Origin: Takakia lepidozioides
Taxonomy: Eukaryota > Plantae > Bryophyta
Reading direction: 5' to 3'
Length of the DNA stretch: 64,000 nucleotides
Assembly: GCA_030704615.1 (NCBI GenBank)
Contig: CM060733.1
Location: 40,114,001-40,178,000, forward strand
The notes under the pieces are model-generated. The model saw nothing but the letters and a program-made list of their open reading frames with translations. It made no database searches and was not told the DNA's origin. A program made the translations under genes and the position numbers. This document shows positions 19,141-56,497 of this stretch, one piece after another. Each line of letters starts with the position of its first letter. The stretch's first letter is position 1.

Positions 19141-19142
19141 AG

Positions 19143-19154
19143 TGGTATCAGAGC
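19143..19154 (+). promoter_or_regulatory. Primer-binding site complementary to the tRNA-iMet 3' end
   Basis: TGGTATCAGAGC lies 2 bp after the 5' LTR. Confidence 0.95.
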
Positions 19155-19219
19155 TGGTTTGCGATCGGGCAGAACAGATTGTGGATTTCGCAATTTCGAG
19201 AAGTAGGGTAATCGTGTGA

Positions 19220-31100: not shown

Positions 31101-31776
31101 ATCCCTTTCAGCAAGGAGCTTCTTCTGCTCTTCTGTTTTCTTTAGCACTTGAGCCTCCATCTCTGAAAAGCGTTTCTCAGCCATGCAAACTTCTTGTTCT
31201 CTTTTTAGCTTCTCTCTCTTCAGTTCTTCCTCAAGACCTGTCATGCTGGTCAGTGCCTGTGAGCACATATCTGACCATGTATATTTTTCCCTCTCCATGT
31301 CAGCAAGTGACCCCTGAATCGCCTGAAGCTCTTGCAGCAGATTCACTTCCCTACGATTTTGCATTTCCCTATCCTGCGCACCAAACAGGAGAGTTCTGCC
31401 CTCTGCATCTCCTGCGACAGCCCCAATCTCAACAACTCATGTCCATGGCCAAGTTGCTCGCCTCCTGGGCGTACTAATACTAATCAATTTACTAATCAAA
31501 CAATTAGAAGGACAGCAGGAGCAGGAAGAATCCAAAGGATACAATACTTCAGTTCGAATACACTACCGGCTCTGCTGACGGAGTCGTAATCACCACTCGT
31601 TTTTTATTAGGATATTCAGAGCCAGATTGCTGCATAGCTGGTCCCAGATCAACAGAAACATTTGCTAGGTGCTGGTTCTGGGCTAGAGGGGCACCCCGTT
31701 GTGTCCCCAATAACATTTGCTCTCTCTCTCCTTGACGCAGACTAATACCAGGGGTTCCCCTGTTCGGTTGCACCAC
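28150..31776 (-). pseudogene. Collapsed pseudogene copy of the coiled-coil gene
   Basis: ORF fragments 28898-29533, 30930-31364 and 31549-31776 match copy A. Copy-A equivalents ~7470-8730, ~11061-12615, ~12691-13159 and ~13865-14030 are absent. There is a frameshift near 29535. Confidence 0.9.
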
Positions 31777-34759
31777 CTGTGGGGAAGGATAAACATGTCA
31801 GTGGGAACTGTAAACTCAACTCAACTCAAACAATTCCTTAACCTTTTCAGAATACGAGTACCATTACAACAATGCACGCTACAGGATGTAACATAGAGTT
31901 CCACAAAAGCACTGCTGCCATATGCACACAATAGTCACTTGGTCAAAGCCCAGAGGAAGGGAGAGAGAAGCACACTGTGCAAAGGGGGTTTGGGGGCAAA
32001 GACAGACGCACTTATTAGACGGTTCCTATGCACCTTGGCTAGGATGGACCCTTCAGGTTATAGTCCTACAGGATGCCAAACCTCCCAGAGCCAGCTGTGA
32101 AGTTTCAGCCCACAGACATACACAAACTCAGCCTTACAACACTGGCACGTAGTCCATGACAAGCTGATTGCAGGGGATTCAGATTTGAAGTAACAACTGC
32201 TATAAACATCATGATTCAGAATGTGCAGCTTAATCTCTGTGGAAGTGCACATATATGTACAAGTTTATGATGATGAATTGGACGTGAATGTCGATCGGAT
32301 GGAAGCGAAATTTTACATTCCCTTACAAGTTTACATTCTATTTATTTTACATTCTCTCAACCATGGTTACAGTTCTATATGTTCTGGTTCCGAACGTGTG
32401 GTCAAGAAAACAACTGAAGAGTCGTTATCCGTTTGATCCTGGAACGCCTAGAAGGCAAAGAAATTATCTAATGCGAGCTGTCACCAGAAAGTTGAGCTGA
32501 CTACAACATCTGTGAAATGCGTCAGACTGACAATATTCACTCCTCCTCCACTTCCAACAACTGATTTTGACTGACTAGGCCGGGGATATTTGTGATGCAT
32601 AGCTCCATGTACAGGCCTTAAGATTGATGTAGGCTCTTCTTGAAAGCTTGAAGAATTCACCCTTGCTCCGCAGTACATCATGCGGCGACAAACCCGCTAA
32701 GAAGAAAACATTTTGACGTATTAAAAGTTGACATCTTCTGCCTTTACATCTTTCTACGTTGACTACATTATGCAAGGTCATAAATCATGATTTTAGCACT
32801 AGATAAGAAAAGAGAAAGAAATAAACTGTTTAACGTCCACAGAGAAAGAAAGACAGACCAGTAAGTTGGAAGAAGGTAAAGAGAGGCATGAGGGGGAGGT
32901 TCATGGCGTGGTCCCGCAGACAGAGAGGCCCTACGCTCCTCTGTTGTGCGCATCGACTCCATTTCCATGGTCTTCCTCGCAGCTCCCAAAATCCTCGACA
33001 AACCAAACGCCAGGCAGTGCCGCACTCCTGGCTAAACCCAAACACTCTGTTTTGCCATATCAGAATCGCCACTTGGATGAAGGTGTAACTTGGATGACAG
33101 CGGCCTTCCAACGAACAATACAATGCAGAATGCAAGTCACAAAAGATGACAAAAGATGGAGTGTGGAAAATATGAGAGAGAAGGAGTGATATGCACTGGA
33201 ATGCTAAAAACAAACAAGTGTGAATTTGAAACACCTCAATGGAGTCCTTCTCAACTTACTGTGGACCTGCAAGGCCACCATAATCAACCAGGCCTTCAAC
33301 AGTTTTCCTGTCTCAGCACAAGGTGTTCACACCCTCTTCTCTCACCTATAACCCATACAGTTGCTTCTCTTATCTCTTCACATCTTTTGGTTGTGGGGGC
33401 TCTCCAGGGCAAGGGTCAAGCTAATAGGATGTCCCCCCTTGCTAGAATCAAGCCTAGTTTTGGATGTAAGGAAAGCTTCAAATCCATTGAAAGAATTCGA
33501 TCTGGGGCAGCATATTTCATGAATTGCAGATTAAGAAAATACAAGGTCCAGGTCTATGCAACTCAATTGAATCAATTTGTATGGGTAGAGGGAAAACTCT
33601 CCTCTCCCAAGCCCATTTCCACTTCACCCCTTGTGGCACAGGCAAATATCAAAGTACTCTTGTTACTTGAGCCTGCCTGGGTTCTCAACAGGGCAATGTG
33701 ATGCTTGCTGAGCTCTAGGCAAATTTCTAAGCAAGGCATATGAATTGGAGAATATTAAGCTATCATTGTATACTAGACAGTAACATTTATACGAAGTCTG
33801 TTTCTGGAAATAGGTGTATCTCTTCATCTCCGCATCCAAGGATTGTGGTCTTCAACCTCGCAGATCACAACACATGTGCTTTCCTGGCCTGTTCAATCTC
33901 CAATTCTTCATTCTGATGAATTTCCTCCTAATAAAGGCAGCTGAGTGATTATTTTTCCAGATTTCATACCTACAAGCTAAATGCTCTGTTTTCAGACTCC
34001 TTTGCATATGCAGACTTTCGATGAAACAAGGGCCCAAAGGTACGCACGCAGAAAATAAAGCAAACTGGCTCTCTGAGTACAAACTGCATAGCGGTCAACT
34101 GGCACAGAACAGATGTCAAAGATTAGTATAATGAAATGATTCAAAATTTGACTCATTGATCTATGATGGGGGCTGGAGAATTGAAACCTCAGCATCTAGT
34201 GCAGGGATCAAATACTGTGTCCTTTTTGTCTACTCACACTGGCAGCCGGGCTGCTTCTCACCCACCAACCAGGGACTTCACTCTATAATGTCCGGAGTGT
34301 AGAGACAGCTCTCTCATTGTCCACCTTTCAAGATAAAAACAAAAGGGTACCCCAAAAAGCCACGCAGACCATATCTGCAGAGCAATCTTGGTGAAAAGGA
34401 ACAATCTTCCTTCAAAAACCATGTCAAACAGAAGCTTACAAGAAGTCACCTAAACTCTCCAACAAAACTGACATGAACTTCCTTCAAATTATAAAGCATG
34501 ATTCACAATGAACCCAACTTTCTACCATGCAGCAAACCGTTGGGCTGAAAAAGTCCAGCTGTAAGGTGTGTGTGTGTATCACCCCTACTAGTCCCAATGT
34601 GTGTAATTTCCCATTCCCTTCACCAGAAACTGATATTGATTAAGTAATTCTTAAGTGGAAGACCTTCCCACAGTAATGAGATTGTAGCTCAAAACCAGTT
34701 CGATTTCTCGTAATCACGGAAACCTCGCAAGTAATTCTCCATTTCTTCACGGGTGTTAT

Positions 34760-36220
34760 CCCATTGAAGTGCCCCAATGACCTCATCAGGAGTGAGCCTT
34801 GTTTCCTGCTCCCGATCAACATGTATGCTTCCCCTTTCTGCTCAAGAGCGGGCAAAGGCCAAATTTCTTCTTCTTGAAAAGAAAGTGGAGGACAGATCAC
34901 GGTATTTTGATGGGGACAACAAGGAAGCCCGATGTGCGGTGAAGCTGCTTATCGATAAGAGCTGCTCCAACCCGCCGGCAGGTAAAATCTTAAAATCGCA
35001 CTAGGTGCACATGTCCTTGAACAGCGCTTTCCTTTTGTATAATTGCTAATAGCAATCGATGTGTTATTGTCTACTTTAGAGTTTTCAGTTTTCCAAGCTT
35101 AGAAGACTCATTTTCTTGTTGGATGCATTCTGCAGAGCCATCAGGTGCACCGGACAATTCTGCTAAGTGGATCAAGTGTATGTTTGCTGGAAAACCCGAG
35201 CTTCCACGTAGTAAGTTTGATCTTACTGAGGTATTATTCCCTATATGTCATGGGAAGCTTCCTGTGACCAAAGAAGCATATCAATCATTCACAAGGGGAG
35301 CGCGGGAGAAAGATGCCGCAAAGAGATATTTGGAAGAGGCAGATGGTTCAGAATTACCCACTCACGAGACATCCGGTTTGAATTTCCATCATCGTGCTCC
35401 ATCAGATGAGATGGACATATCATCCTTCATTGCCTACCAATTCAGTTCGTTCTTTGACCTGTTTAAATCGTATAGCCCGCACAAACTTATCCACTCTCTG
35501 CTGTTCAATTGTAACGAAAAATTAGGGGATAGTCTCACTAGTAGTACTAAAGAGAGGCCCGATACCCTTTTAATAGCCCGTTCACGCACCCTCCTTATAG
35601 GTGAGGACAAGTGAGGACAAGCTCAAAAGTTTGGAGGATCTCAAGGTAAAGGTGAGACGACTTTCCCCTATTCTTTATGGAGACTTGGAATTTATACTGG
35701 GTTGTATAGCAGCAGGCTCACTATTTCAGTGGGTTTATGTGGGCAAGAATGGCAGTTTTGACCTCAGTCTAATCTGTCCATGTCTTGATTTAGACTTTTT
35801 GAACGTAAATGCTTGTTTTATCTTAGCCTTGGCTATGCTTATCACTTGATGCATAGCATGGCAAAGTCACTCCCGGGAGTCAATAGCGACCATGCAATGT
35901 TTTCTACGGATGAAGAGGGAGGCAGGACAATACATTTCGAGCCCGACTATGTTCAGAAGAGTGTTAAGAACTCCAAAAAATATTTTACTTCTGTGGGGAC
36001 TACACTGGATGCGGTAAAGAAGGCATATACATTTGCAACAGGATGTCGCTTTCTTCCTCAGTGCACATGGGACCAAGGTAAAGTTAAACGAGGAACGTAC
36101 ACTGTTGATTATGGACCTGTTGGATACAAACCCAATTTGAGGTCTGAGCAGGATATTAGGAATATGACTAGTTGTGTCTGTGAAGCCCTACATGTCCTTC
36201 ACGTAAATGGCCTTCTCCAC
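34760..36220 (+). pseudogene. Crinkler (CRN)-like effector pseudogene: short N-terminal exon, PD-(D/E)xK REase-like domain, and the N-terminal half of a kinase-like domain
   Basis: Phase-1 intron 34982-35135. Motifs: TKERPDTLLIA...LIGEDK, then EDLKVK..LSPILYGDLEFILGCIAAGSLFQW, then GPVGY...CVCEALHVLHVNGLLH, cut off just before the expected RD. A 10-bp tandem duplication gtgaggacaa (35601-35620) and a second frameshift near 35800 break the frame. Confidence 0.7.
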
Positions 36221-36419
36221 ATTTGCTCTTGACAGGGAAGCTTCAGAGGCTGTAATATACAATTGAGCTGCTTTGTTCACAATATCAGTACAGTCAAGGT
36301 TACAGGGTAATTCTCCGGCGAGGTATTTTCTGTATGGGTGACTGGAGCATCTGTACCAGGAGACTTTTTTCTTATTTGTGAACTGAGCTAGCATTTATAA
36401 TATATGTGTGAGATTGCAG

Positions 36420-36489
36420 GTTGGCAGATGAGGTTGCAGTGGGAAAGGATGGGTCAGTTTACTTCAACGATGCAACGTCTAAGTTTGGT
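36420..36489 (+). pseudogene. Orphan exon fragment of a strictosidine-synthase-like (SSL) beta-propeller gene
   Basis: Acceptor ttgcag, then LADEVAVGKDGSVYFNDATSKFG, matching the SSL-type F/LADDVxVxxDGSxYFxDASxKF motif. It stops exactly where homology to copy A resumes. Confidence 0.7.
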
Positions 36490-37759
36490 TAGGACTCAAA
36501 CATTTGACACAGATACGACGTGTGTAGCTGTGGCTTCACATAGTGCTTGAGAGAGGAAAGATTAAATCAGAGGAAATTATAAACACCCAACAGAAGTCCA
36601 ATGAGCTTATGGGAAGTCCTGTGGAAACAGAAAGGAAGAAAGTAAATAAACGATAACATCCACAGATGCCCACAGGTCCCATTTGGGTGATGCTGCCACT
36701 CCCACTGTATTAGAAATTGCCCTGCATTCACTCCATACATATATGCATCGTGAAAATGGAGGAGAGAGACTGAATGACAAGTTTCAGCATTACAAATAGA
36801 GCTGATGCACCTATATGCTTGCAACTGATGTGAGGCAGTGGAGGAGTTTGGCGGGGGAATTTAGCAAAACCACATTCGAGATTGTCAGGTTCCGGTTCTA
36901 TGCGCGATAGCTTTTCTAAACAAACGTTTAATCCCTACTGACTGTGCAACTCCGGGCCGAGGAAATAAACTGCACATCCAGCGTGAAAAACACAAAAACC
37001 AACCAAGCAGCCCTCTACCTCCAAACTGTTCGAATCCAAACGAACAATTTCTATACCTCCACTCCCCTTCCCAACCCAACGCTTCGATACAGTCTGAGCA
37101 GAAGTATTACCCGGCGCTGTTCTGGCACTCTCCCCGCCATGCCTTCATTCAAATTTCCTTTGCTTCTTCCTGAATCCGATCCAGTCGAATCACGAGCCCA
37201 CCAATATATTGCACAACACAAGCGTCCGACACGGATTCTCTCCTAAGCTGCTTCTACCAGAATCCACATTACTGTAATCAGGCATACAGCGTGAAACATA
37301 TCATACTCCCGCAATCTTCCCCTCTCCCCTCCCCTGCCTTGTTTCTCCCGAAACAAAGTAGAAACGTTGTGTTCCAAGCAAATCACACGCCCCTCCCACA
37401 CTTCCATCTCTCCCCTGTCCGATTCTTCAACGCAGAATTCGGCACAGAAATCATGGCGGGTATTTTGAAGATTCTGAAGATTCATGGAATTTCGAACAGT
37501 GAATGGTTCCGTCCGTAAAGACGACTCGACGATGGACCCTGAATGGATGGTTTCTCTTCCGGTCATCGTCAGTGCGAGGGCAATGTGGAGGGACAGACGA
37601 AACTTGGACGGAAAGACTTTCTCGTTGAGGGATGATCATTGGTTAGGGGATTTAGACCTGCGGCGGCGTCACCGTTTCTTTCTTTTGCATTTCGACAGTG
37701 GCTGAATCACTCGTTTTGCAACCACATAGTCCCTGTCACCACAGTTTTCAGGAAGATGA

Positions 37760-38200: not shown

Positions 38201-38269
38201 TCACCTCGAGTATGGTCTATCTCTCTACAACTCTCTCTAACTTTAAACTGGCCTTCCTAGCTTAGGTTA

Positions 38270-38850
38270 TCTGGAAAGCCCGAACTAATTGTTCACCTCC
38301 AGGCTAGTCCCACTACAGGAGTGAGCCCCTCACAGGTAATATTTATTCGCACTGTTTGCAACCAAACTGGGTGCGGGGTCGATAGCCACTAGGCTGCAAA
38401 AAACAAAGTACATTGTCTTTGGGGTCTACCTACCCTCAGCACTAAACTGAAATTTCAACTCAGGGCACCTCTGAACAATAAACAGATGCAGAGAGGAAAG
38501 GGAGATTGTCAATGCCACATGTGCAGGCCTGAAGACAATATCCATTTTCTGTTACAATGTCAGAGATATTCTCATCAGAGTGACCCACTTCAGGAACACA
38601 AAACTTTCAAAATCTCAAGGCCCCTGGCCGCCCTGGCCCTGTTCGGGTCTTATTGCTGCACAGCACACACACAGTGGATTGATGCTTGTGTGGAGGGCTT
38701 TCTGGAGGAAATCCAGAAAGCTCGAACCAATCGTTTATACCAAGGTAAGTCCCACTCCTGGAGTGAGCCCATCACAGACGTAGTTTCTGTTCCCTCTTGA
38801 TCCACCCAAACTGGGCATGGGGTCTATGGCCGCAAGGCTCCGGCAAACGG
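38270..38850 (+). mobile_element. Two tandem LINE 3'-end fragments; the longer one retains the ORF2 C-terminal CCHC motif
   Basis: CHMCRPEDNIHFLLQCQRY at ~38512-38570. The tails match 17330-17673 (reverse complement) and 53905-54215. Confidence 0.65.
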
Positions 38851-39366: not shown

Positions 39367-42257
39367 CTACTGCCCGCCAAAGAAGTTACTGTTGATGATA
39401 GAGCGCAAAACTGGAATAATCCCAATAAGGACCATTTGCAGCTGCTCTGAACTGCTTGCTCGAATACTGATTTGGCCTGCACCCCTGTTATTTAAATTAG
39501 CACGACCAACCAGCATAGTCTTCCCCAACATGAACTGTGACTGCAGGTTCCCACCGATAGCCAAGTCCCCATGCCAATCCATGATTGATAGACCAAGTGT
39601 GGAAAGCGTACGACTCAGGGGGTACTCTTTCCCTCTCAGTGTGGCCTCCAAACTACCCCCAAATGCCTTGTCGCCGCGGCCTGTAAGAACCCCTCCATTT
39701 ACTACCATTTTCAACCTTTTCCCCACAATCAACCTATCTTCGAGCTTCAATCCACCAGCTATCGTATCCCCCAGCAAAGTGAAAGTCAGGCCTGCAGTCG
39801 TCTTGTTCCTCTTGAAGTTGTTAAACCGGGTCTCTGCCCTGAGAGTGTATGCAAGATCCTTCCCAATGGTTTGTACATCAAACCCGGTCAATGTCACTTT
39901 GCCCTCTCCATGCTTCAACGAGGCTGCACATTCAACGGTAACGTTTGCCTCCTTCTTATCCTTGGTGATCTGCCCTGATACAGATGCTGGCACTTTATCT
40001 GCCACAACAAAAACCTTTTCCACGTTGAAGCCATCATAGCCAGGGTCGTGGTCCCACCCATGGGTCTCCAATACAGGGCGTACCAACCACTGGTTGACTG
40101 TCTCCAGGTACCGGTATCTGCAACCGGAATGCTGGATGTGAGAAAGAGAAAAGCAGAAAAGAGCAAATTTTATCAAGCCAGTGCTGCCTATTGAGTCAAA
40201 ACCTCTCTGCAGAAATCAGCCACATTGTGAAATTTGACACCAACAAATTCAAAAAGGAAATTTTGTTGAAAAGGTGATCGTACCGATGACTGGGGTTATC
40301 CGAATCAAATGAAGGTGGCAGAGCCATGTCGGGCATGGGAACCGGAACAGCAGCCCTTCCAGCTTCATCATCAAGGTTGGAGCTCTCCTCAGGAGACAGT
40401 TCCTCTTTGGGCATGGTAGCAGCTCGTTTCCTCATCTCTTTCCGTCGCCGGAGTTCTTCCCTCCATTGCTTCTTCTGGAACAGCCTCTCCCGATCCTCCA
40501 CCTCTTCGAAGTACTGCTGCTTTTGCTCAGGGCTTAGCTCAGCCAGTTCTTCCTTTGCAAGGGGCCTGACAAGTGGGACATCAGAAAAACAGAATAGCTT
40601 GGACCATCAAACATTCATCTCACTAGGATAGACCAGGATACAAAGCCATGATGCACACTATCGTGGTTGGTATCACACCATCTTAAGCCTTACCCTCCCT
40701 GTCATACGTTTGGATCCTCTCATGACTAGGAGTGACACATTGTCCTGAAACGCTTTTGCCTCCCTGCCTACTGATCTGAACTAGTGCTAAGTGATCTAAT
40801 ATAATTTGACAAAAATACCTGAAAGACGGCAACTCATCATAGTCGTCACCATCTGACTCATCCTCTTCCAGCTCCTCATCTGTATCATCTTCATCGCCCA
40901 TCTGTTCATCTGGCATTTTGAGCTGTGCCCGAGACTGCAGGAGAGAGGAGAGGAGGAAAGGCAAGGGGGGTACACGTGGACGCTGCCCAAAGGGCCTTCC
41001 CGGGGTACTAGTGTCTTGAAGCTTCAGCAACAAATTGGCCTCAGCGAGTATCTTGGAGGCAAAACACAGTAACAAAAGCTGTGGTTTCCATATCTGCCCA
41101 TTTGGGAGCACACGCTGCCCTGACCGGTTGGTCCTGCAAGCAGGGTGATTTTCCACTAGAGACACAGGATTCATAAGCCTCATATCTCCAGCAGCTTGCC
41201 GAATCGTTTGTTGTACAACATGGGACCTCTGGGCTACAAACATCTCATAGCTCAACGGAACACCATTGGGTCCATCTGGCGGTGCTGATGAGGCATGGGT
41301 AAGAACCACAATGGCATTGAACCACACAGCAGCACCAAAGAGATCGGTTATTGTACGCAACAGAGGTAGATCTCCATAGTCTCGACTCTGCATATCGAGC
41401 CGGTCAAAATAAAGAACGATATCCGGGGATGATTTTCTGATGAACCTCTTCACTGACCCCATGATCCTTTCATTGTGTTGCTGATCAGCCACTGAAGGCA
41501 GCAGCCCTGGTGTGTCGATCACCCTCACCTGCACGACCAACATGAGACAGTTTCAGAGTTGGAAACAACCATAACCTACAGGAAATGTACTAGTTACACT
41601 TCACTGGCAATAGCCTCTTGTCGCAAGAGAGAAAGAGAGAGACACCATGCATATGTGGGGCCCAAACATGGTGTAGCCTTCCACATCTTGTGCTCCCAAT
41701 GCGTGTCTCCTTTTCAAATACCAACACAAAGGAGGATTTCCAAAGTAGGCTTTCACAAACAGTGGAGGCAGGGCTATGTGACCCTGTTTGTGCACGAAGC
41801 TCCCAGGAGTCCTTCTCTTGGCTCTCCTGTGTTCACTGGCTGTGTATCTGGCTCAAGCCTGCTAAACTGCCAAAGTAGATTGTACGAAACCCCCTTTGCA
41901 GCATGGCGTAGTGGGCCCATCAAACCGGACGGAAAGGGTGATAACCACGAGGACGCTGGGTTTTAGAGGCAAAGGTCTAAAATGGTCACTTATCCAGATG
42001 AGCCTGTGGGAAGCACATCTGCATGCACAAAGGGCAAGACAGCGTTTGCCATAGCCTTGTTGCCATAGACCCCGCACCCAGATTCGGTGGAAGAAGAGTA
42101 ATCAGCACTACCTTTGGCCAACTAGTACCATACCCTTCAGATCATCCTTAAGAGCCTCACCAATGTCACAAACCGGAAACAAGTCCAGGGTTTATGCATA
42201 ACTTCAGACATTCTTCGTGCTTCCGACATGGCCTTATACACATGAGCCTCCAAAGAG

Positions 42258-42304
<47 letters not shown>

Positions 42305-45063
42305 ACCCAACTGGCCACAAAGTACCATTGAGATCAGATACCCTGCACGATACTAGCGATCCTGGAGCTCCTCATGTGGTTTTCAGCCTCAACCCACCAG
42401 AGTAAGAAATTTAACCCAGAAGTTGTCAGAGCCAACCACCAATAATCGGTCTCCAATTGTGATGTTGTACTGAGGGCTGGGACAGACATTGGTCAAAAAC
42501 TGTGACATCTACATCACTGCACTACCAGTCAGAGAATAGGAACTGTAGGGCACAATCATAAACTGTTCTCCCAAGATTGGCTATGACATACCATTGGCCA
42601 ACTAGTATCATACCTTAATGCCATGCACACTCCCGATAATCTCTTGCACCTTGTTGGTCGACGGGTTGAACGCATTTGTCCCACTGCGAGGCTCATCAAA
42701 AATGGAATTGATAGTGGCACTCTTACCCACCCCTGTTTTCCCCAGTAGCAAAATTGTGCATGCAAAATCAAGCTCCTCTTCTTGGCCAGAAGCTTCTTGT
42801 TCCTCTGCTATGGCATTTGCACGGTCAAAGCTGAAGGCGCCAGCTCGGCTAGCAGTTCGACCCCCTCTTAACTGTTCAGCTAAACCCAGGCGATAAAGAA
42901 CTTGGGCTACCACTACATTTTGGGGAGACTGGCCAAGCCGGTGAGCTAGCCTCAAAAACTTCACCCGAATATTCTGGAGTTTCTCGCGTGTCTCATCATT
43001 TCCATCATTGTTTCCATCACCATTTGAAGGATTCTCCTCTGCTGGGGCAGATAACTGAGAGGCAGCCGGACCGTTGCTGCGCTGTACCTGCCTTGATGCT
43101 GGTTCCAAAGACGTGACCGAACGACTCCGCGCCGTTGGCCTGTCTGGTAGAGAAGGCCCTGCGGCACCCAAAGACGGGGGCTTGGGGATTGCTTTTGACC
43201 GCTCCAAATCTAAATCTGCCCGTTCATCTTCCTCGTCATCTTCCTCTTCCTCTGACTCATCAACTACAGACCCACCCCTAACTTCCTCGGGAACAACCTG
43301 TGCTGGTCCTTCTTCCTCCTTTTTAACACCATGCTCATTCGTGATGAGTGGAACTGGTGTCTCCTCTACATCCTTTGTAGCTTTGAACTCTGGAGCAATG
43401 CTCTGTGGAGCTGCCACAGTCTCTTCTTGATCCTGGGAATCATCAACTCCAGACCCATCCCTAATTTCTTCAGGGACAACCTGTGCTGGTGGCTCTTCTT
43501 CCCTTTTCTCACCATGTCCATTACCATCTTCGGATATGCGTGGAACTGGTGTCTCCTCTGCCTCTGCATCCCCATTAGCCTCCCCTGCTTTCGGCTCCGG
43601 GGCACTGATCTGTGCTGGTGTCACAGTCTCCTCTTCCCCTGCTTTTGACTCTGGGGCAGAGACCTGTGCAGGTGCTACAGTCTCCTTCTGATCCTCTGAC
43701 TCGTCCACTCCAGATGCATCCCTAACCTCTTCAGGGACAACAGGTGCTGCTTCTTCTTCTTCTTTTTCATCCCCATTAGTATGTTGGGTTATCACTGGAA
43801 CTGGTGGCTTCTCTACCTCTGCATCCCCAGCAACCTCTGGTTCTTTCAACTCTGGAGCAATGCCCTGTGCAGGGGCAGTCTCTTCCTGATCCTCTGCCCT
43901 GTCCGCTGCAGACCCATCCATTACTTCTTGGGGAGCACCCGGTGCTGCTGGTTGTGCTGCTGGTTCATCTCCCTTTCCATCACCATTGGCATCTTGGGAA
44001 ACGACTGGAACTGGTTCCTGTGCATCCCCAGAAACTTCCAGTGCTTTTGACGATGCCGGGATGGTCGGTGCAGGTGCTAGAGAATCGTCCTGATCCTCTG
44101 ATTGGTCCTCCACTCCAGACCCCTTTCTAACTTCTTCAGGAACCACCTGTGGTTCTGGTTCCTCCTCTACCTCTGCATCCCTTCCAGTCTCTTCCTCTTC
44201 ATCCTTTGATTCTCTGGCAATAATTCGTGCTACTGCCTCGTCATCTTCTCCATCTTCCTTAGATTCTCGGGCTATGATCCGGGCAACCGGCTCTTCCTCC
44301 TCCTCTTGCTCACCATCTTCCTCTTCATCCCCATCATCCTCTTCATCCCCGTCCTCCTCTTGCTCTTCATCATCTTCGTGATCTCCGTCCTCCTCATGAC
44401 CTCCCTCGTCATCCTTGGATTCTCGTGCAATGATTCGCGCTACTGGCTCATCCTCCTCTTGGTCCACATCACTATCTTCATCCTCTCCATCATTTGCTTC
44501 TTCAAAATCGTCGCCCATCTCTCCATACACGCTCTCAACATCTATACGCCATGCGCATAACAAGGGTCAGTGCATCCCTTTTCAACCTCGAGTGAACATG
44601 CACTCCATTTCTCTCCCCCCTCCCCATATGGATTCTCCCATGCCAAATCATGCACCACCGTTGCTCACCATAAACACAACTACATACTTGGCAAACAACG
44701 TAAACTAGTAAACTACGAGGGCATTTCTGCAGGCACGCTCCTATTCTGCCGTGATGCAAAACAAGCTCAAGCAGCAAAGCACGGAGGTGCAATCCCCAAA
44801 CAAAGGCTGCCCTTGAGCACGCAAAATCGGGATGCAGCCAACAACCCACCTGAGCCAATCAAGCGGGGCACACTATGCGCATCTTCGAATGTCTCTCCGT
44901 CATGAGACAGGGCATCCCCATTCAAGGACTCTCCATCCACGGAACCGTCCTGCCAGTTTTCGGCACCGAGATGGTCCGCCGCTGGCACGAATACCTTGGC
45001 TGCAGCATCTTGAGAGGCGTCAGCTGCTGCAGGCTCGGCCGCCATATCCCTCACAGCATCCAT
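39367..45063 (-). CDS. TOC132: TOC159-family chloroplast import receptor GTPase (Toc132/Toc120-like), 5 exons, ~1294 aa
   Basis: Exons 45063-44850, 44541-42614, 41528-40819, 40565-40284 and 40117-39367 (GT-AG, 3885 nt in frame). Acidic A-domain; G-domain GKTGVGKS / VIDTPG / VLTH; M-domain VPVPMPDMALPPSFDSDNP, HGWDHD, LNNRGAGQISIRASSSEQLQ. The symbol denotes the subgroup; orthology is not proven. Confidence 0.95.
42261..42303. repeat. (GA)n microsatellite in TOC intron 2
   Basis: About 21 uninterrupted GA units. Confidence 0.95.
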
Positions 45064-45358
45064 GGTTGTTGCAGGCAATCTAGCAGCCGTGCTCTCTCAT
45101 CCCTTCACACAAAACCCCACCTTTGTGTGTGTGTCTTAGTCCCAAAACCCCAGCCTGCCTGCGCAGTGTAAGTGTGTGTAGTCCCTTGAGCCACGGAAGA
45201 TGAACAGATAAGACTGCCAAGGGGCGGCCCTAGCTGCCCTCCCTATGCTCCCCCTCCCCCCTCACTAATCCCCCTCCACTCTCACTAATCAGCCACTATT
45301 GTCACTAACCCCTCCTTTACTGTCCCGGGCTACTAACTAACCCTACCGCATTTCCTGC

Positions 45359-45367
45359 AAACCCTAA
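45359..45367 (+). promoter_or_regulatory. Telo-box (AAACCCTAA) about 300 bp upstream of the TOC start, next to repeated CACTAA motifs
   Basis: Exact motif match; function is inferred only. Confidence 0.3.
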
Positions 45368-45376
45368 TCCAGAGCT

Positions 45377-45727
45377 ATGTGCTCTGGGCATCATGCATCT
45401 CTGTTCATCCATTTCAACGTCCTCGTTGGAATAAATCATCCATTAGTCCATTGGAAGGTTGTTGATGTTGTGGGATGTGCATGGTGGCATATGATTAATA
45501 ACATCCTCGCAGAAAATTATTCGGACTACGAAATTGTTCGATACGGTAGATAGGTAATGACTGGCTCGGTTTATGTGCTCTGGGCATCATGCATCTCTGT
45601 TCATCCATTTCAACGTCCTCGTTCTGATAGATCATCCGATTGTTGATGTTGTGGGATGTGCACCGTCGCATATGATAAATGACATCCTCGCGAAAATTTA
45701 TTCGGACTACCAAATTGTTCGATAGGA
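45377..45727. repeat. Imperfect ~195-bp tandem duplication
   Basis: tatgtgctctgggcatcatgcatctctgttcatccatttcaacgtcctcgtt at 45377 and 45572; ttattcggactac..aaattgttcgata occurs twice. Confidence 0.9.
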
Positions 45728-48700
45728 CGGAGGTTGGGCAGCGCATGAGCACAAGTAAATATTAAGGACATTCCTTAAATGTTTTCGAATACTCTCCAAA
45801 ATTGAGAAACTAAAAACTTTGCGAAACTTTTTTTAACTGCTCACATAGGCCCTCACAACATCACTTAAGAAACAAGTAACACCTATACACGATAAACATG
45901 TTACCCTATAGGCGTGGGGTTTCCTCACGTTATGCGAACCGGATACCCCAAAAAACCCCAAAAAAACAAATTTCGTGGTTTTCAGTCCGGGTATTGGCAG
46001 TATAAGCCCTAGAAAGTTATTTTCGCATTGAGAAAATAAATTTGAAGGTAACTCAGATGTAATTCCTATGACCGCAGTTTGAAAACATTTAACCCCTATG
46101 ACCGCGAGTTGTGCTCACGCCGTGCTCACGCTCTGCTCATAGGATACCAACCCCCCATAGGACCGATACTACCCACAATAGAGTTCTCCAATGCGACCGG
46201 ATAAATTTATCCACAAGCATGGATTTGAACGATACTTTTCTTACTTTGCATGGATGAATGTATGTATACAATTCACTATGCAATTCCGTTGTGATGGCGA
46301 TGTTCACCTAGGAGAAGTTGAGTACCAAAATGGGAATTTCTACATAATATAGGAATATCCATAGAATCTTTATGGTGACACAAAAAAGAGCTGAGGCAAC
46401 AAAAAATTTGAGAATCTGTTATGCTCCCTCGGCCACAAGCCATCCACAAGTACACAATCGACCCTTGCATGAGGTACCCATTCCAAAAAGCATATTGCAG
46501 TAGTTTAGGATATTCCAATATTTGAAGTGATATTTAGATGTCAAATATTTTTTATTTTTTGTAAGTCTTATGGCATTTCTTTCATAGATTCCAACTAAAT
46601 TTTGTCACCTGGTATTTTTAATTAACTCGTTGTGCCTGGATTGCTGCATAATTAACCTCACAATGTCCTCCGTTGTGGCAGTGAGGATGTCCACCAGATG
46701 CGCCGTAGAGGAGGCACTCCAGGAAGAATGTACGGATTCGTCCATGTTTGTTGTAGGCATGTCAATGTCGGAGTCCAGGCACATTTCTTGCACATGCACA
46801 TTATCAGGTTACAAGCAAATTACAAACAATGACTAGCATAATATTGAACGAGACGTGAACTCGTCCAACTCACCTCCCGCATATAGTCGCCAAACTGGAG
46901 GAAACGATAATGTCACCATGCTAGCCAACTGACCATTGCTCCCTCGTCTGATTTCTTTACAGCACTTGACGTTGTCCACATAACCACTAGTAATGGTACT
47001 ATGCCCGGATATCTATTGGATGTCTAAATATAAATACAACAATATATGAAGCAAGCCAGTTTGTTGGCCTTGCCTTCCTAAGGCATAACTACGCAAAGGG
47101 TTGAGCGGCTTATCGCTGCTATAGCACCAATACTTTCTATTACACTTCCAATTCGATAGAGAGAGTTGCCACTAGAATATTTTGTCCATATTTTTAATGG
47201 ATGATATCCCCTGGATGAACAGTTCATGGTCAGAACCAGTTTTGTTTGGCCTTCGGGTCCGGAGTTCAACTTCTTGTGCATGCCATAAATGAGGATATTA
47301 CCCTGTGTGCCACCCGGGTGATTCAGGGCTCAAATCCTATTACCGCAATATTTATCAATAGGTCTCCGATGCAACACAAAAAGCATTGAGGATCTCAACA
47401 ATGTTATGCACGTTGACAAGCTAGGAAACGCTACTCCCCATATTTTTTTGTGCTCCTCATAATCTGCATAGCTGGCCTCTTCGTGTCCAATCAAAACGTT
47501 CCACATAGGTGTGGTTGTGCATTAGGCATAAACTAAGGGTTGTAACTTGTAACCCGAGCTGTGTCGCTCCTTGTCGCAGAATTGACAAACCGAGCATTAG
47601 CAGCTATGCTGCTCGGGGGTTGGTATCTCGTGAGCAGGAAAAAAAAAACAAGCATGAGCACGACCCACTATTATCAGGGTAAACATGTTTGCAAACTGGA
47701 ATATAAGTCATAGGCGGACCAGGGTACTGCTACATTAATAGGGTTAGTTACATGGTCTATGAGTATATTTTAGCTAAAAACCCTATTTTAGCTGAAGTGG
47801 TGTTCCGCTATTACATATTTGTGTTTTATAGAGGATTTTAGTTATAGAGATATTTGATATTATAATGTTATGAGCAACAGTTCGCTAGCGAAATTACCTC
47901 AAAAATTGTGCTCACACAATGAGTTTTGTTGGCAAAATAAACCAAAAAATAAAATGAAATCGAAAATGCAGTATTCTTCTAATTTCGAAACTACTCAAAA
48001 ATTTGTGCTTACATGAGCACCATGAGTTTCGTTGGCGAAACAAACCCAAAAAATCAATCAATCAATCAATCAATCGAAAAGATAGTTCGCGCGACTCGCA
48101 CAAATTCTGATGTAATTGTGCAATTTTGTCACGTGAGCGTATTTTCGTTTCATTATAGGGATATTTTTGGAATCTATAAAATATTCTAGTTCGCTCGCGT
48201 GAGTACGCTCAGACGCTGCCCAACCTCTGCTGCCCCCTGCGCTACCTAGTAAATAGACCATGTAAATGACGAGAATGACGTAGCAGTACCCAATGCCCGC
48301 CTATGGCTCGTATTTCCGTTTGCAAACATATTACCCATATCACCGGGCCTGTGATAGCGTGGACGGTTTTCCTACTACAAGTGATCCAACACACAACCAA
48401 CTCCTCTTATCTGTGGGAGTCTGGGGAAATGTAGCACAAACAATAGAGGGATTCTTTCCTGAATGTCCAGTGGTCATATGCATTGCTGCTAGATCGGCCG
48501 GCCCCACCCAAGGAAGGGAATTCCGCCTCTTTTATTGGTGCATCATCCCTCTTGCATGGCGTGGGAGTTGAACAAACAAACAATGCGTCTGGTGTGTTCA
48601 ACAAAAGTCACATGAGGTGTGGGGTGGACTAAGTAGTGGGGTGGTGAGGTTGGTGCCAAATTGACTACCGAGTTCAACATTTGGCCCACAAGCTTACTGG

Positions 48701-48778
48701 CTCTCTTGTAGAGAGAGACTTTGCAACATGTTGAAGTCAATGGAGAAAATGTGGTCAAAGGACCTTACACCACGTCCG

Positions 48779-48897
48779 GGCTCTGATTTGTGCTGAGGTA
48801 TGCACCTTACTCTCACCTTCCTCTTATGTTTTGCCAAAGCGTCAAGGCTCCGATTTGTGCTGAGGTATGCACCTTACTCTTTTATGTTTTTCCAAAG
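48779..48897. repeat. Short direct repeat (~60 bp x2)
   Basis: gatttgtgctgaggtatgcaccttactct...ttatgtttt.ccaaagc occurs twice. Confidence 0.85.
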
Positions 48898-50776
48898 CAA
48901 GAGAGCCTATCGCCCTGTTAGGCTTGTTTTTTCCTTGCTCTCCGGTCAGTCAATATGATCTTCAGGGCTCCAGCCCCTTTCAATATCATACTTTCAAACA
49001 ACAACAAAAACAGTAATACACTTTCTAGTGATAACTATATAGTTATCCAATAAGTCAACAAGGACACCCCACTTGGATAATACATCAATATATATGACCG
49101 CAACCAAAGTTAGCGTAAATAAGAGCCTCTTCCCTTTGCTATTGTCCCTTTGGGGGGTGGGCTCTATTACTTGGATAACAGATTTTGGGTGGGATGTGGT
49201 GCCAAGTTTGACTTGCTTTCCTTTTGTAGTAAAGCTTTTGTGGTCCCTTGACATCTCTCTAACACAAATCATAATCTCTTCAAATAAGAGCCACCTTCAG
49301 AACTAACTTAGGAACTGGCTCAAGTCACTTATTTACGTCTACTTTGCCGGAGTCTTCTCTCACTTCAAACAAATAACCTACAAAATTAGACAAAATGTTG
49401 ATGATACTTGGATGCGCTAGGTTTTTTTTTTCCCTTTAATTTTCAAAGGGAAACACCTGGGAGCAGGCTATTCGTCGTGTACAATCCCAGAAAAAGAATA
49501 TATTGCCACTCAACTCTTTGTGAATCAAGATATTAAATTTATGTTCAACACTACTGGCTGGATCAATCATGTCGCCTATCACTAAAGCAACTCCTCCCAA
49601 TTATGTTTTTTCTAAAATTGAAAGGGAGACAGCCAACAGCAAGAAAAATAAAATAAAAAATAAAACAGACCGGATTACATGCTCTTCAATGTTTTTTTTC
49701 TGGGAAAAAATGGCCAGATTTTGACCTGGAAAATGGGTCAGCTACATGTACAAATGAATTATAGGGGTAAAATCCGAAAATTTCACAAGTAGTTGAGAAT
49801 TAGGAGCCTAATTTTGCAGACGTGGCCCAGTTAAAACGTGCCACTTGGAATATAGCCACTTTTCTATCCCTGCCACCTCGTTATTCTTGCCACATGGGCA
49901 CTGGACAGAATTCACATGTGGCCCCGCCTGCGATTTTGAAAAAATGAAAAGAAAAACACTAACTTGCTCTTTAGTTTGTGACATTTTTCATATTTGTTTT
50001 CGACCCGCTTTATTTTTATTTATTTTTATTTTATTTTTAAAGTGCATAAATAATATTATACTACAATTGTCATTATTTATAACCGGGATCGGGGTGGGAA
50101 AAAGTTAGGATGGTTGAACGGTTCAACGATCATCAAATGGCATCATCCCATTCGACGATGTGTCCGCCACATGGCACGTTTTCACCCCTATGCTCTGTAC
50201 GTTTGCCAAGTGGACACATCGTGGTCGCTCCAAGTTCGGATCATTGGGAGTCGTCTCACTGGAACGGGATATATGGGTCACGTAATTAATTGGAATAAAA
50301 GAAATTACGAAATTACAATGTTTTACATAAATATTAAACAAATAAGCAGCGGTCGGAGGGGTCCGTCGGCGTGTTGGACTCCACTCGCAGTCTGCGGAAC
50401 CCATTCTATTAACAGACATCTGCCCCAGGGTGGCTGCCCTGGCTGCCCAGGCGTCATCGGGCATGGAGGAAAAATTGTTACGGAGGCTACTTGTCCCTGG
50501 GCAGACAAGGATTGTTTTTCGGGGCAGACCTAGGAAGGTTCAAAGGCCTGCCCGGCTCTCTTATTTGAGGATTTGTACCCTAATAAGGTGCGGAGCTGTG
50601 GCTATGGATGCCTGCAGAGGTTACTTAGAGGCGTGTTGATGTGGACGTGCGTGATGGGGGAGGGACATGGTGTGTTGAGGTCTGTTGATGCTCTGTTGAT
50701 GCTCTGTTTCCTGGTGAGGGAAGACGAGCAGTTATAGATCTGAAGGGAGTTGGAGGAGTCGAGCAAGTGTGGAAGA

Positions 50777-53700
50777 ATGGGGCGGGGGGCCGCTGAGGCT
50801 GGAGCAGCTGATGCATCTGAAGGTGCATACAAATCGTTTGGCCCTGCGGCGGAGAGAGGTGGTGGGGATGAGAGCCCGCGGGATGGTTCGGGGGACGGAG
50901 TGGGTGCGTCTCGTGATGGAGATGCAGTGGAGGATGCTGTGCCCAGCATGACTGGCTCAGGTGAGTCGTTGGGATTCATCTCACCAGCAGCCAGTGTCTG
51001 TTATGCGTTGAGTTTTGGTGCCTGCTGTCTTTTCCCAATCCCTGTAACTTGCAACTGTGGTCGGGAACCGCAACTGCCAACAGCAAATCGAGACAAGGTC
51101 ATCCATTGCGTTAAAAAAATTGCCTGGGGAAATAATGCCCTGTCCCACACACACGCTTCCTCCCCATGTGTTACCCTTTTGCAATTCTCGAACGTCACCG
51201 TTTCGTTTTCCCTCAGGCTTTTTTCTTATGGATTTCATATTTTGTCACGGAGGGCTTCTCCTTAGGTGGCAAAGGACTCGAGACCTTTTTTATTTATTTT
51301 TCTCTCTCTCTCTCCCCCTCGGTTTCGGATTTATGGGAAAAGCCCTTGCAATGTTTCTCTCGCCATTTTTGTTGGGTGACCAAACGATCACTCTGTATGG
51401 TGCTGTCCACATCCAACGAACTCTCTGCTCCACCATGAAATATCTCCCTCTCTCTCTCTCTCTCCTGGTCATCATAATGTCATCTAAACTACCAAGGTCA
51501 ACTTTGTCAGTCTTCGGGGTTCCTGTTCTCCCCGCTCCCCTCCCCTCTTCCTCCTAATTGTGGTTCATGACCACAAGGCTAGTGAAGCCAAGTCTAATTA
51601 ACACATTTTAAAATAAGAATGTGAAACCCTAATCCACTCATCTGTAGATTGTGTCGTTTGCGTTTGATGCGATGCAATTCGGTGGGCCCTTCAACAAGTG
51701 AGTACATAAAGCATCCTTCAAGATAATCAAGGTTCTTATTGTTGTCAGCACATGCTAACTCTGGATAGTACATGCCTAACCGATGTGGAGGTGGCAAACA
51801 GGCTTTTTTCTTAGGCTTATGTTGGGCCCTGTAAATGTTCGTGCTGCACGGAATGACAACCGATATAAAGTGAAAGAGGAGTACAACACTTACAGGGTAA
51901 GCTACCTCTAACCAGAGGTTAATTCCTTCGCCCCTCTCTCTATGCAGCACTTCTAGGGGCTGACTTTAAACCCTCTTGGGTTTATGTCCCATGAATGGCC
52001 TCCTGAATATATCAGGAGACTATGGCCTTGAGGGTATGAATGATAATAGATCTTTCATAAATAGCATCCAAAAACAGAGTATCTGAAAGCAGTTGTTTGG
52101 CACTTAGAGACCTAGCTCTTAGATCCTAAATACAGTGTTATGCACCAGGATTGGCCTCCATGACCAATTCGACTTACCAAGCGTCAAGTAAATTTCAAGG
52201 AGATACCTGAATATTGTGCAGTTGTTCCAGATCGCCAGCTTGTGGAGCTGGAATTCATTCTCTCCTCTTCCTGCTGGATCTCTTACTTGAACCTGACACC
52301 TATGTGGTGTCCTTTTGAAAATCTCAGCTTTGCCAATGGCTGGTGAAGTAGGACAAGCCTCCACCAGTCCTTCAATAGCCATCTAGACAGATAATAAAAT
52401 TTCCATTATGGCAATCTAGCTATAGATGAGTAGCAGAAGTGTGTGTGCCACTGCAGAGAAGGGCTGAGCACGTACTTCTCCACCCACCAATCCATGCAAA
52501 TAGTAGTTCATCAGCTATCAATGGGCTTCTGTATTGAGCAGCCAGGGAAGTTGGGAATGTTCAGCCAGAGCTGGGTCTTTGGTAGACCCACAAATGTGGC
52601 AAAGTAGTTATTTAGTAGAAGTGTACCACTGATTCTGTGAGTCCAATACACTTTCTTTTCCTCTTGTTTTCTGTGTGTTCAATATGTGGACTATGGCTTG
52701 TGGGTGACCAGGATAGAACAGCGGTGTTGTTTCTGGCCTTCCCGGTTATATTGTTAGTGTTAAAGAACCAAGTGTGGAAAGGGTGCTTTCCAGCTTTGCC
52801 GGTTCAAATATACCAGGTACTCTCCTTTCATGGAACCCATTTGATACTCGGATTATGTTTCACAGTGGGATTTGGTCAGCAGTCCAGGCACCTTAGTCTT
52901 CAGGGTGCTCAAGTTATGGGTTTGGTTTGAAGTAGTCGGGGTCGACATGCCTACCATGCATGATAAGTTTGTTTCTGATTGCAGGCATGGCTACTATTTT
53001 TCTACACTAGTCTTGCGCTGCGTGAGAACATTTTGAGGGTCAATGGTAGTGACATTCGGCCGTGGTGTGTACCTCTTCCACCCACCCACCGCCCCCCCCT
53101 CCTGTGTTTGATTTTTGTGGTTAGACATGACCGGTATCCTAGATACAAGCATGCCATGTATAGGTACATAGTCTGTCCTTGTTGCTAGCAGCTGAAGCAG
53201 CTGACACTGACGGCATGAAGTTCTTCGAGGAAACACCCCAACCCTACCTACCACAGGCGTAGTTTATCTTTAACAGATTGGACATTTATGTGGCCATGCA
53301 CATGCATTGCATGGGTGGGTTTGCCAGGTGGGTATACCATCATTACTGTGCAATGTTTATGGCACTGGTGAGCCTCACGTGGGGCATTCAAGGGGAGCCT
53401 AATTGCAGTCGCAAGCAGGTATGCTTATGGTTTCTAAGATGGACAGCTTCATATGCTTTACGCTTCGTTTGTCTCTTTGCAGCTTTCGGTTGTATGGTAA
53501 TAATGTTTGTCATTATTTGTGTGATCCACTAATCTGGCAAGGAGGTCTTCATAGGGACCAGGCCTGGCCACCCATAGATTCTCATTGCTCTGACAGTTCA
53601 GCAACTAGCTGTTCATGTCAGGGCCCCGGGGGGCAGCTGTTTTCAGGATGGAATGCCAAGAATTCAAAACATCAATATTTTAAATCATGTTTACAAGTTG

Positions 53701-56497
53701 GGAATCTAGATCTTTGCATAGTATTACTTCATTTCCAGTTATTGATGGTTTGTGGGGATTGATGTCCACAGCAAGGAGTGCGGCTGTTTCTGGCATGGGC
53801 AGTGATGCAGGGTGTGGCCATGCTTCTGCAAAACCGCTACCAACGTCAGCGCCTGTACACCCGTATCGCACTGGGCAAGGTCTCTCTCTCCCTCTCTCTC
53901 TTACACCCAATATCCATTTATAAAATGTCTAGGGTATTCTCATCAGAGAGCGACCCTCTACAGGGCCAATCAAGAACATAGTCCCTGCACCTCTGTTCAC
54001 GAATTTTCAATATCTCAAGACTGAGCCGAAAGCTCAGCTCTGTAGGGGTCTAATTGCTAGCCTCACACCGAGCAGATTGATGCTTGTGGGAAGGCTTTCT
54101 AGAGGAAATCTGGAAAGCCTTGTTTATATCAAGGTTAAGTCCACTACTGGATTGAGCCCCTCACAAAGGTAGTGTCTGTTCCCTCTTGCACAAGGCAGTA
54201 CATTCATTCTCTTACACCCACTTGGAATCCCACTGCTTGAGTGAGCATTTCCAACAAGCCTTCTTTCTTGCCTGGTTGGTCTCAATGTTCACAAAGAAAT
54301 GCAGGCTAAAGCCTGGGTGATGTTGGATGTATGCAGGCAGGGAGGATGGATGTGGTGTGGGGAGAGACAGCAGGTGTGAAAGGACAGCTCTGGATACTCT
54401 ACCCCCTTCTTTTTATCCTGCAGGTTAATTTCTCTTACCTTGTTTCGAATTTAAATTTTAGCAAGGAATGTGGGACACCCTACAGTGTGCTTTTTGACCA
54501 CAACCTTGGCAATGAAAGAAATGCTGATGCAGACAGGGGGTGGGCAAAGTAGTGAGGGAATTGGGGCTGCAGCGTGTGGGAGATAAAAGTGGTAGAAGCC
54601 CTAGAATGCCAGCCATAGCCAGGTGGTGCTAAGGCTTTCACACCCAAATCATGGACAGACAGAGCACACATGGCCAACTAGTGACTAAGTATAGCAATCA
54701 AAAGGAAGCCACAAGTGGGGGACTTTTTGAAACCAAGCTGTCATGATCTGTAGTGCAACTGTGACCGTAAGAGCCACTACTCATCCATCCCACCAATCAG
54801 AGGGAAAAGTTGGACCCCAACAGTCAACCTACTTGGAGAAAGCAAGTCAATGCTTTTTTGTCCCCAGGTTCAGTTAAGGTGAGACGACAAGCTCTAGGCT
54901 GCATTCCTTTTACCCTCAGACAAGAGCTCTTTGCAGTGGAATTTGAATCAGCTGCTGCTTTATATTTTACCCAGCACAACATCCTTGTTCTTCAGCAGAA
55001 GGCAACATTTGGCTTTCAAGATGTGTTAGTTCTTGGACGCTGTCTAAGCACGGCCACCATACTTCTGGTTAAACGGAAGTTTGAGGTGGCTTTCTACCTT
55101 GTGGAACCTTAACAGCGTAGAGCATGAGGGACTATGTCTGGATTCGTCAGACCTCAGGGCAGAAGAAGCTTGAGAACATCCTCTGGGCCCCTAAGGGCCC
55201 ATTGGACAAAGTAAAATAACAAAAGAAACTGCAGGAAACATCAAGTGACACCTGAAGAGGAAGGGGAAGCAATACTCTGCAATGTCAGCCAGAGACAATA
55301 TTTAATTAAAAAGAGTCCCAGCTCAGCCATGTTTCAGTAAGCAATACTCCACGGATGGTTGATGGGAGAAAGAGATGTCTTCTAGCTACAAGCGATGTGG
55401 TGCCCCTGCAAATGGCTGACAAGTTTGCGTCAGTCAGAGCCCCATTTTGTAGTAGTTACAGGAGCTCTGCCGGTTCTTGGAAAAATATATCAGACATTGG
55501 GAAGTCTTTTATCTGTTGTACTGTGCAAGCACTTCAAGACTAGTCACTCCAGATTCAACAGACATCCACCAAATACTCCAGCCTGAAACATTTTCTGCTC
55601 ACAATCCAATTGTTTCTGCCAAGCCATGCCATGTTGTGGTATTTCGAAGCAGTTCTTTGCTGTCCCATTTATCTCATTTCAACACATTTATATATTTATG
55701 TCATTACAATACTCAGACAGGACCAGGTGTCACAAACTGGAGAAAATTGAAGGCACAGGCCGGGGTGGACCTCCTCCCTGAGTTCAGTCTCTACATGGCT
55801 ATCACCAAGTTTTCCAGAGTGAATCTTGTCCAGACCTCGGACTGGTGACACTGAGCATAAGTAACTTGGGTACATCCTGGGGTCCACTCGAAACCTATTA
55901 CTGTATTTAGCCAAGTCTCTGATAGAATCAAATGGGCACTCACTGCCCGCAGCTTTCCTCAGTGCTAAGAGTTGATAATGTGCCAGAGCTCGTCGTACTT
56001 ACCTTCTTAAGAATTATGGAAGCTAAAGCAACCGGCAAAATGAGGGGTGTTTTTGTTTGATGCAGGCCTTTCAGTTTTTCATTGGCCTGTTGCTTCTACG
56101 GACAGCCATACTGGAAGACGACTCAGAGTGGCAGGCATGTTACTGTGATCCTTTCTTGTGATATCTGCATTTTTCACTTACTCCTCTTTCGTCTCTTTCA
56201 AACAACTTGGCGAGTTTCATCATGCAGCGACTATAGGGCTAGAATTTCAAGCACACAATTTCAAGTAGAATTAATTTATGTGGTGTAATGATTTCATGGA
56301 AGATTTCGTGGGATTGGTGGGTGGGACAGGTGGTAGTGTGTGGATTGTTGCTGTTGACTATGGCAGTTGGCAACTTCAGTAACACTATGGCCACTGTCTT
56401 TGCAAAGAACCAAATAAAGGCCGAGATGAAGAAGAGAACTCAGCAGGTGCTGCAGCGCATGTCAACCGGCAAGCGGGCTTCCAAGAAAGTTTTGTGA
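50777..56497 (+). CDS. TMEM120: TMEM120/TMPIT-family membrane protein with a non-native, TOC159-exon-1-derived N-terminus (chimeric), 9 exons, ~328 aa
   Basis: Exons 50777-50960, 51802-51896, 52712-52816, 52985-53064, 53328-53418, 53772-53879, 54337-54423, 56066-56134 and 56330-56497 total 987 nt with no stop. Motifs: LGPVNVRA, KVKEEYN, LALRENILRVNGSDIRPWWVYHHYCAM, MQGVAMLLQNRYQRQRLYTRIALGK, MDVVWGETAGV, MAVGNF. Exons 2-9 are high confidence; the exon 1 linkage is inferred. Confidence 0.88.
53905..54215 (+). mobile_element. LINE 3'-end fragment in TMEM120 intron 6
   Basis: Same family as 17330-17673 and 38470-38850. Confidence 0.7.

Follow-up and report, generated by a model that had tools for sequence, protein, structure and literature searches.

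Does a TMEM120 gene of the moss Takakia lepidozioides begin with an exon that was copied from a chloroplast-import receptor gene next to it? Takakia is an early-branching moss, the sister group of the remaining mosses (PMC13120521). The question arises in a window of 64,000 nucleotides (assembly GCA_030704615.1, contig CM060733.1, forward-strand positions 40,114,001 to 40,178,000; all coordinates below count from the first letter of the window). TMEM120 is a conserved membrane protein of lipid metabolism. Its function is debated: a channel, a coenzyme A (CoA)-binding protein and a partner in lipid synthesis have been considered. Exon capture, too, is a known process. Our reading, with a probability of roughly 70%, is that the locus holds a live chimeric TMEM120 gene which would have arisen by exon capture from the adjoining gene of the TOC120/132 type.

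The evidence starts with the two first exons. A local DNA alignment pairs positions 50788-50972 with the inverted stretch 45043-44838; 134 of 182 aligned bases are identical, and the score of 115 compares with a mean of 26 and a maximum of 44 in 1000 shuffles. At the protein level 31 of 56 aligned residues agree (score 92; 10,000 shuffles, mean 30, maximum 59; BLASTP E 6e-6). No other inverted pair in the region is as long as these copies. Both end at the same alignment position with a phase-1 GT donor, and the net length difference of the aligned exon parts is a multiple of three. The similarity extends from codon 4 to 12 nucleotides (nt) inside the intron; these 12 bases match at ten positions, compared with 4-7 of 12 for seven other introns of both genes. 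Upstream of codon 4 and beyond the 12 intron bases nothing is alignable, and the intron 50961..51801 contains no remnant of TOC exon 2. An earlier note, made from the sequence alone, had claimed a TOC origin of this exon at about half identity, phase-1 donors at the same position and the absence of a following TOC exon 2. The analysis upholds this. Its further claim that DNA similarity runs into the intron is correct for the first 12 nt and for nothing beyond. A decayed upstream start (TTG at 50750, nine codons 5' of the ATG), considered in the light of Physcomitrium and Ceratodon TOC proteins, has no statistical support.

The copied exon fits the frame of what follows. It comprises 184 nt, i.e., 61 codons and one nucleotide, and the nine exons listed in Table 1, joined in silico, encode 328 amino acids (aa) with no internal stop, just as the earlier note had modelled via the phase-1 acceptor at 51802. 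Five single exons separately match the transmembrane region of Pfam family PF07851 (TMEM120A-B); database searches and structure predictions were run with single exons or natural homologues, and the joined translation was compared locally only. The model thus unites in one frame stretches whose homologues belong to two different genes, i.e., it is a chimera. The neighbouring gene, whose exon 1 is homologous to the leader, is a full member of the TOC159-family receptor GTPases of the TOC120/132 type (Physcomitrium Toc101/Toc108 and Sphagnum orthologues). The chimera, in contrast, is not: in its 328-aa product Pfam detects neither an AIG1-type GTPase nor the TOC159_MAD membrane-anchor domain. 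A single-sequence structure model of the 61-aa leader is devoid of secondary structure, which taken alone is weak evidence.

Is this gene alive? In an alignment of 50 sequences 76 positions are invariant and 71 near-invariant, and the TMEM120 core retains every one of them. Among them is the CoA-pocket tryptophan, W193 in human TMEM120A and W156 here, as aligned via the Ceratodon protein P0426 to the structure 7n0k. Against three moss coding sequences nonsynonymous divergence (dN) is about 0.12 at a synonymous divergence (dS) of 1.07-1.67, a comparison which the earlier note had suggested. Identity to land-plant homologues amounts to 73-84%, with the highest values (up to 84%) for mosses. In a TMEM120 tree the gene has a normal branch length and is positioned outside the clade of Sphagnum and Bryopsida and outside the liverworts, at an unresolved node. 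The intron positions match those of bryophyte orthologues. The GC-AG intron (56134-56135) is found at the same position in Sphagnum fallax TMEM120 (L002:14403), and the Physcomitrium paralogue that was checked has GT. The residues ahead of Met68 and the phase-1 acceptor are conserved. With its conserved core, low dN and preserved introns the gene looks alive, and it therefore needs an upstream phase-1 exon that provides a start codon. Of the open phase-1 candidates between 45100 and 51800, 50777-50960 alone has the consensus donor CAG/GTGAGT, and this exon is the only strong candidate. Judged from the DNA, the locus probably is a real, functional chimeric gene.

What has been lost? In Sphagnum, Physcomitrium and Marchantia the coding sequence of native TMEM120 is divided into ten exons. 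Upstream of the GFFL exon (exon 3), and within about 1.7 kb of it, lie exon 1 (phase 0) and exon 2 (27 codons, phase 1). Profiles of these two exons find no counterpart in the 64-kb window when both strands are searched with stops read as X (best hidden Markov model scores 1.9 and 4.4 bits). At control loci the same profiles matched 40 of 50 and 48 of 50 times with 19-102 bits. Matches by tblastn at 9072-9806 (E 0.03-0.4) were dismissed as chance. The earlier note had found no native N-terminal exon nearby; this absence extends to the entire window, yet the native bryophyte gene has two such exons, not one. In the AlphaFold model of P0426 helices 15-77 and 83-101 lie ahead of the junction residue G115 and helix 116-122 follows it; by alignment this residue is G62 of the chimera and G106 of human TMEM120A. 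Consequently, both coiled-coil helices (CC1, CC2) are lost and the re-entrant helix is kept. With TMEM120A/B (TACAN, PF07851; PDB 7n0k, 7f3t and relatives) the predicted protein shares the re-entrant loop and helix between the two domains, six transmembrane (TM) helices, the W193 equivalent and an HH motif. It differs by its 61-aa TOC-derived leader, and the coiled-coil helices of the plant proteins (~100-120 aa) are gone; hence, the gene encodes a variant and not a canonical TMEM120. The re-entrant helix also mediates dimer contacts (PMC8376247, PMC8480983). The loss of dimerisation implied in the earlier note was therefore overstated, as re-entrant helix and TM contacts persist. Animal TMEM120 is a CoA-binding homodimer of the endoplasmic reticulum (ER) and nuclear envelope (PMC8376247, PMC8480983, PMC12855804, bioRxiv 10.1101/2021.06.29.450322). 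By analogy the chimera would most likely still be an ER/nuclear-envelope protein which handles CoA or acyl-CoA. In the literature searched, papers on plant TMEM120 function or on deletion of the coiled coil were not found.

Has the acquired exon been under constraint, as the earlier note suspected from differences at third codon positions? Between the two exon copies dS is 0.71 and dN 0.32 (omega 0.44, Fisher p 0.022), and 24 of 52 differences fall on third codon positions (p=0.037). In simulations a neutral copy stayed open and this similar with a probability of 0.03-0.09, a constrained copy with one of 0.25-0.96 (TOC omega 0.6 to 0). Omega and simulation together favor constraint about 10-fold or more over neutrality, which is not decisive; by these sequence measures constraint is the better fit than drift. 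The copying event appears to be old, yet younger than the split from Sphagnum, a rough dating as dS is near saturation. The original copy may have been a whole TOC paralogue which later lost its body, or the exon alone.

We propose the following course of events. The 5' end of the TOC gene would have been copied and placed in inverted orientation beside its parent, upstream of TMEM120 exon 3, where it replaced the native exons 1 and 2. TOC intron 1 has the same phase as TMEM120 intron 2 (phase 1), so that splicing would have brought the new exon into frame at once. The captured exon would supply the start codon, a strong donor and an acidic, probably disordered cytosolic leader. The product, which would retain the CoA-binding barrel of six helices as well as the re-entrant helix, may dimerise via the re-entrant loop and membrane contacts alone; its localisation and oligomeric state we infer. 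Other plant chimeras generated by exon capture or fusion, as described in two Oryza surveys (PMC3673630, PMC9199173), likewise consist of parts of two genes joined by a phase-compatible splice. Compared with these, the Takakia event appears to be old and would have remodelled a deeply conserved gene.

Are TMEM120 proteins devoid of a coiled coil confined to Takakia? Seven moss proteins of 286-291 aa (P0211 (L001:219-1094), P0425 (L054-L056), P0427 (L057, L058), P0429, P0431-P0433) lack both native N-terminal modules and start with an acidic leader of 35-40 aa. They are known from intronless, transcript-like contigs only (JGI, Logan; several samples). The contigs that were looked up have an in-frame stop three codons 5' of the ATG, and one sample contains two paralogues. 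In the tree these proteins are nested among Bryopsida sequences. A single clade of the window gene and the short-leader proteins was rejected (approximately unbiased test, p 0.029, quick tree), and the leaders are unrelated. Like the chimera these proteins have no coiled coil, a short acidic Gly-rich leader and the same S/G join position. They differ in descent: of four leaders that were tested, three go back to the first exon of native TMEM120, as marked by an EPKGG motif, whereas the leader of the chimera is TOC-derived. Mosses seem to have evolved coiled-coil-less TMEM120 on at least two occasions. Since other mosses retain such a protein, the chimera becomes more plausible as a working protein and at the same time less unique. 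The claim of a new membrane protein without coiled coil thus stands for the loss of both helices and falls for its singularity. Papers on this clade were not found in the literature searched.

Several points speak against our reading. The splice joining 50960 to 51802 is predicted. The window protein is not among the best 120 matches of two homologue searches, an absence of little weight, and the first exon has no relative in metagenomes, so that no second species confirms the chimera. The pairwise omega mixes both lineages and is based on 56 codons. TOC exon 1 of the window (71 aa) is far shorter than those of Sphagnum (345 aa) and Ceratodon (181 aa) and barely alignable with them (best p 0.017 among 13 targets). 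Lastly, according to Xue et al. (PMC8376247) TMEM120A must act as a dimer which is built in part by the coiled coil.

The predicted splice leaves room for the view that the TOC-like exon is a bystander relic and TMEM120 starts at an unrecognisable short exon, at the internal Met68 or at native exons that lie upstream by more than 51 kb. As the short leaders of other mosses show poor conservation, one more exon of this kind could have escaped notice, and the simulated probability of a neutral copy reaches 0.09. However, the exon is conserved between unalignable flanks, it has kept an open frame and a consensus donor at dS 0.7, the residues upstream of Met68 and the phase-1 acceptor are conserved, and native exons are close to exon 3 in Sphagnum, Physcomitrium and Marchantia. 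We regard a relic as unlikely. The direction of transfer might also be reversed, i.e., TMEM120 shortened its own exon 1, which was then copied to the TOC gene in place of a longer TOC exon. The donors of both genes are phase 1, the TOC exon 1 of the window is unusually short, and in other mosses the coiled coil indeed disappeared through truncation of a native exon. Yet both exon copies are unlike any native or short TMEM120 leader (protein p 0.13-0.95, and DNA likewise). In the TOC genes of Sphagnum and Ceratodon, as here, an exon opening with an acidic stretch and F/Y-EEA is preceded by a phase-1 intron; the donor is therefore native to TOC. Within their first 120 aa, 28 of 83 long TOC proteins contain F[ED][ED]A, as against none of 164 TMEM120 proteins; FEDA, typical of TOC120/132 N-termini, is intact in TOC exon 1 and decayed in the TMEM120 copy. 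Further, TOC exon 1 aligns weakly from Met1 with Ceratodon TOC, and reversal requires two events instead of one. Transfer from TOC to TMEM120 is the simpler reading, and we infer this direction. As acidic-domain exons barely align between mosses, reversal retains some weight, though it is less probable still than a relic. One could also invoke an assembly mis-join, to which a second TOC paralogue contributed its 5' end and a normal TMEM120 gene its 3' part, in view of tandem TOC paralogues in Ceratodon and the (CT)n tracts within intron 50961..51801. We consider it highly improbable: the window has no N, a copy that is 26% divergent is no collapsed or doubled repeat, the junction is a phase-correct intron of normal size and there is no orphan TOC exon 2.

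A tie to plastid import would be an addition to exon capture, not a substitute for it: a promoter shared with TOC, or a piece of the acidic (A-) domain by which TOC partners or preproteins are recruited to contact sites of ER and plastid. The head-to-head arrangement, the constraint on the leader and a role of A-domains in substrate discrimination, mentioned in PMC4274882, could be quoted in its favor. The earlier note had assumed that TOC donated its promoter and that the chimera is co-regulated with plastid import. Neither assumption is supported: a distance of 5.7 kb, which includes transposon-like repeats, separates the ATGs, the copies share no similarity upstream of codon 4, and there is no indication of a bidirectional promoter. 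The leader takes about 57 of some 500 acidic-domain residues of TOC, and acidic leaders of unrelated origin serve in other mosses. The targeting information of Toc159 is C-terminal and its A-domain is disordered and divergent (PMC4274882); one would thus not expect the leader to direct the protein to plastids. Such a tie is very unlikely.

Table 1. Features of the locus, in window coordinates
Feature	Position	Strand	Basis or remark
Exon 1 of the chimera, putatively TOC-derived; 61-aa acidic Gly/Ala/Ser-rich leader	50777..50960	+	ATG 50777; phase-1 donor CAG/GTGAGT
Predicted intron 1 (841 nt)	50961..51801	+	ends at the conserved TMEM120 acceptor; similar to TOC intron 1 over its first 12 nt
TMEM120 exon 2 (native exon 3)	51802..51896	+	re-entrant helix and start of TM1; Pfam PF07851 95-125
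TMEM120 exon 3	52712..52816	+	joined model, bryophyte exon comparison
TMEM120 exon 4	52985..53064	+	Pfam match, joined model
TMEM120 exon 5, W156 (human W193, CoA site) and HH motif	53328..53418	+	Pfam, joined model, alignment
TMEM120 exon 6	53772..53879	+	Pfam match, joined model
TMEM120 exon 7	54337..54423	+	joined model, bryophyte exon comparison
TMEM120 exon 8, followed by GC-AG intron	56066..56134	+	joined model; same intron in the Sphagnum gene
TMEM120 exon 9 with stop codon	56330..56497	+	Pfam match, joined model
TOC120/132-type gene, exon 1 (71 codons + 1, phase-1 donor)	45063-44850	-	likely source of the copy
Remaining TOC159-family gene: acidic domain, AIG1 GTPase, TOC159_MAD membrane domain	39367..44541	-	Pfam, exon comparison, tree
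Spacer between the two ATGs, 5.7 kb	45064..50776	.	transposon-like inverted repeats; no mirror symmetry outside the exon copies

The neighbouring gene (39367-45063) has all hallmarks of the TOC159 family: acidic domain, AIG1 GTPase and TOC159_MAD. In a tree of 583 columns from the G and M domains, which includes no liverwort or hornwort TOC, it groups with moss TOC proteins (100% support) as their first branch (84% for the rest). Its acidic domain (43238-44493) has internal repeats, among them a three-fold ARIIARESK motif that is present once in a Sphagnum TOC; the intron which splits the acidic-domain exon in Sphagnum and Ceratodon is absent. Ceratodon (L053:10001-22297) carries two TOC159-family genes in tandem, i.e., local TOC duplication occurred in another moss too. 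Several Sphagnum annotations (L052:10001-26153; P0450, P0452, P0471, P0474) join a phosphofructokinase to the downstream TOC across a 5-kb gap, probably a merge of gene models. In the spacer inverted repeats are found at 45730/48227 and, nested, at 47610-47760/48253-48399; they resemble the termini of non-autonomous DNA transposons. A 196-bp direct repeat is located at 45376-45724. A fold-back palindrome of the whole spacer was rejected, as inverted similarity is seen only in the exon copies and in one local pair of repeats.

Elsewhere the window contains an apparently intact Ty3/Gypsy long-terminal-repeat retrotransposon of the chromovirus type (18430-24517) with direct repeats of ~700 bp, 92% identical. 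Its open reading frame (19220-23863, 1547 aa) comprises gag, protease, reverse transcriptase, RNase H, integrase and chromodomain. The segments 5114-16400 and 26906-37459 form a large direct duplication with blocks 90-97% identical; therein a repeat array (8350-9955) is part of a 696-aa open reading frame (7963-10053, minus strand) with no convincing Pfam match. A dispersed repeat has copies 68-82% identical at 17383-17868, 38269-38849, 42043-42116 and 53923-54188, in TOC and TMEM120 introns and elsewhere.

What does this signify for TMEM120? That the chimera is the only or main TMEM120 of its lineage, expressed and working without a coiled coil, is a tentative proposition which we would rather doubt than accept. 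A new pathway is not indicated and a link to plastid import is unsupported. In the chimeric-gene literature searched the partner pair TMEM120-TOC was not found, and Takakia would present a clear and old case in which one conserved gene captured a phase-compatible exon of another, unrelated one. In the cryo-EM papers the coiled coil counts as an integral part of the TMEM120 dimer. If the tentative proposition on the Takakia gene is true, mosses dropped a domain held to be integral at least twice, and one of these losses was the capture of a chloroplast-import exon that may bring new partners. Natural variants which lack the coiled coil and retain every invariant residue would constitute a ready test of its role.

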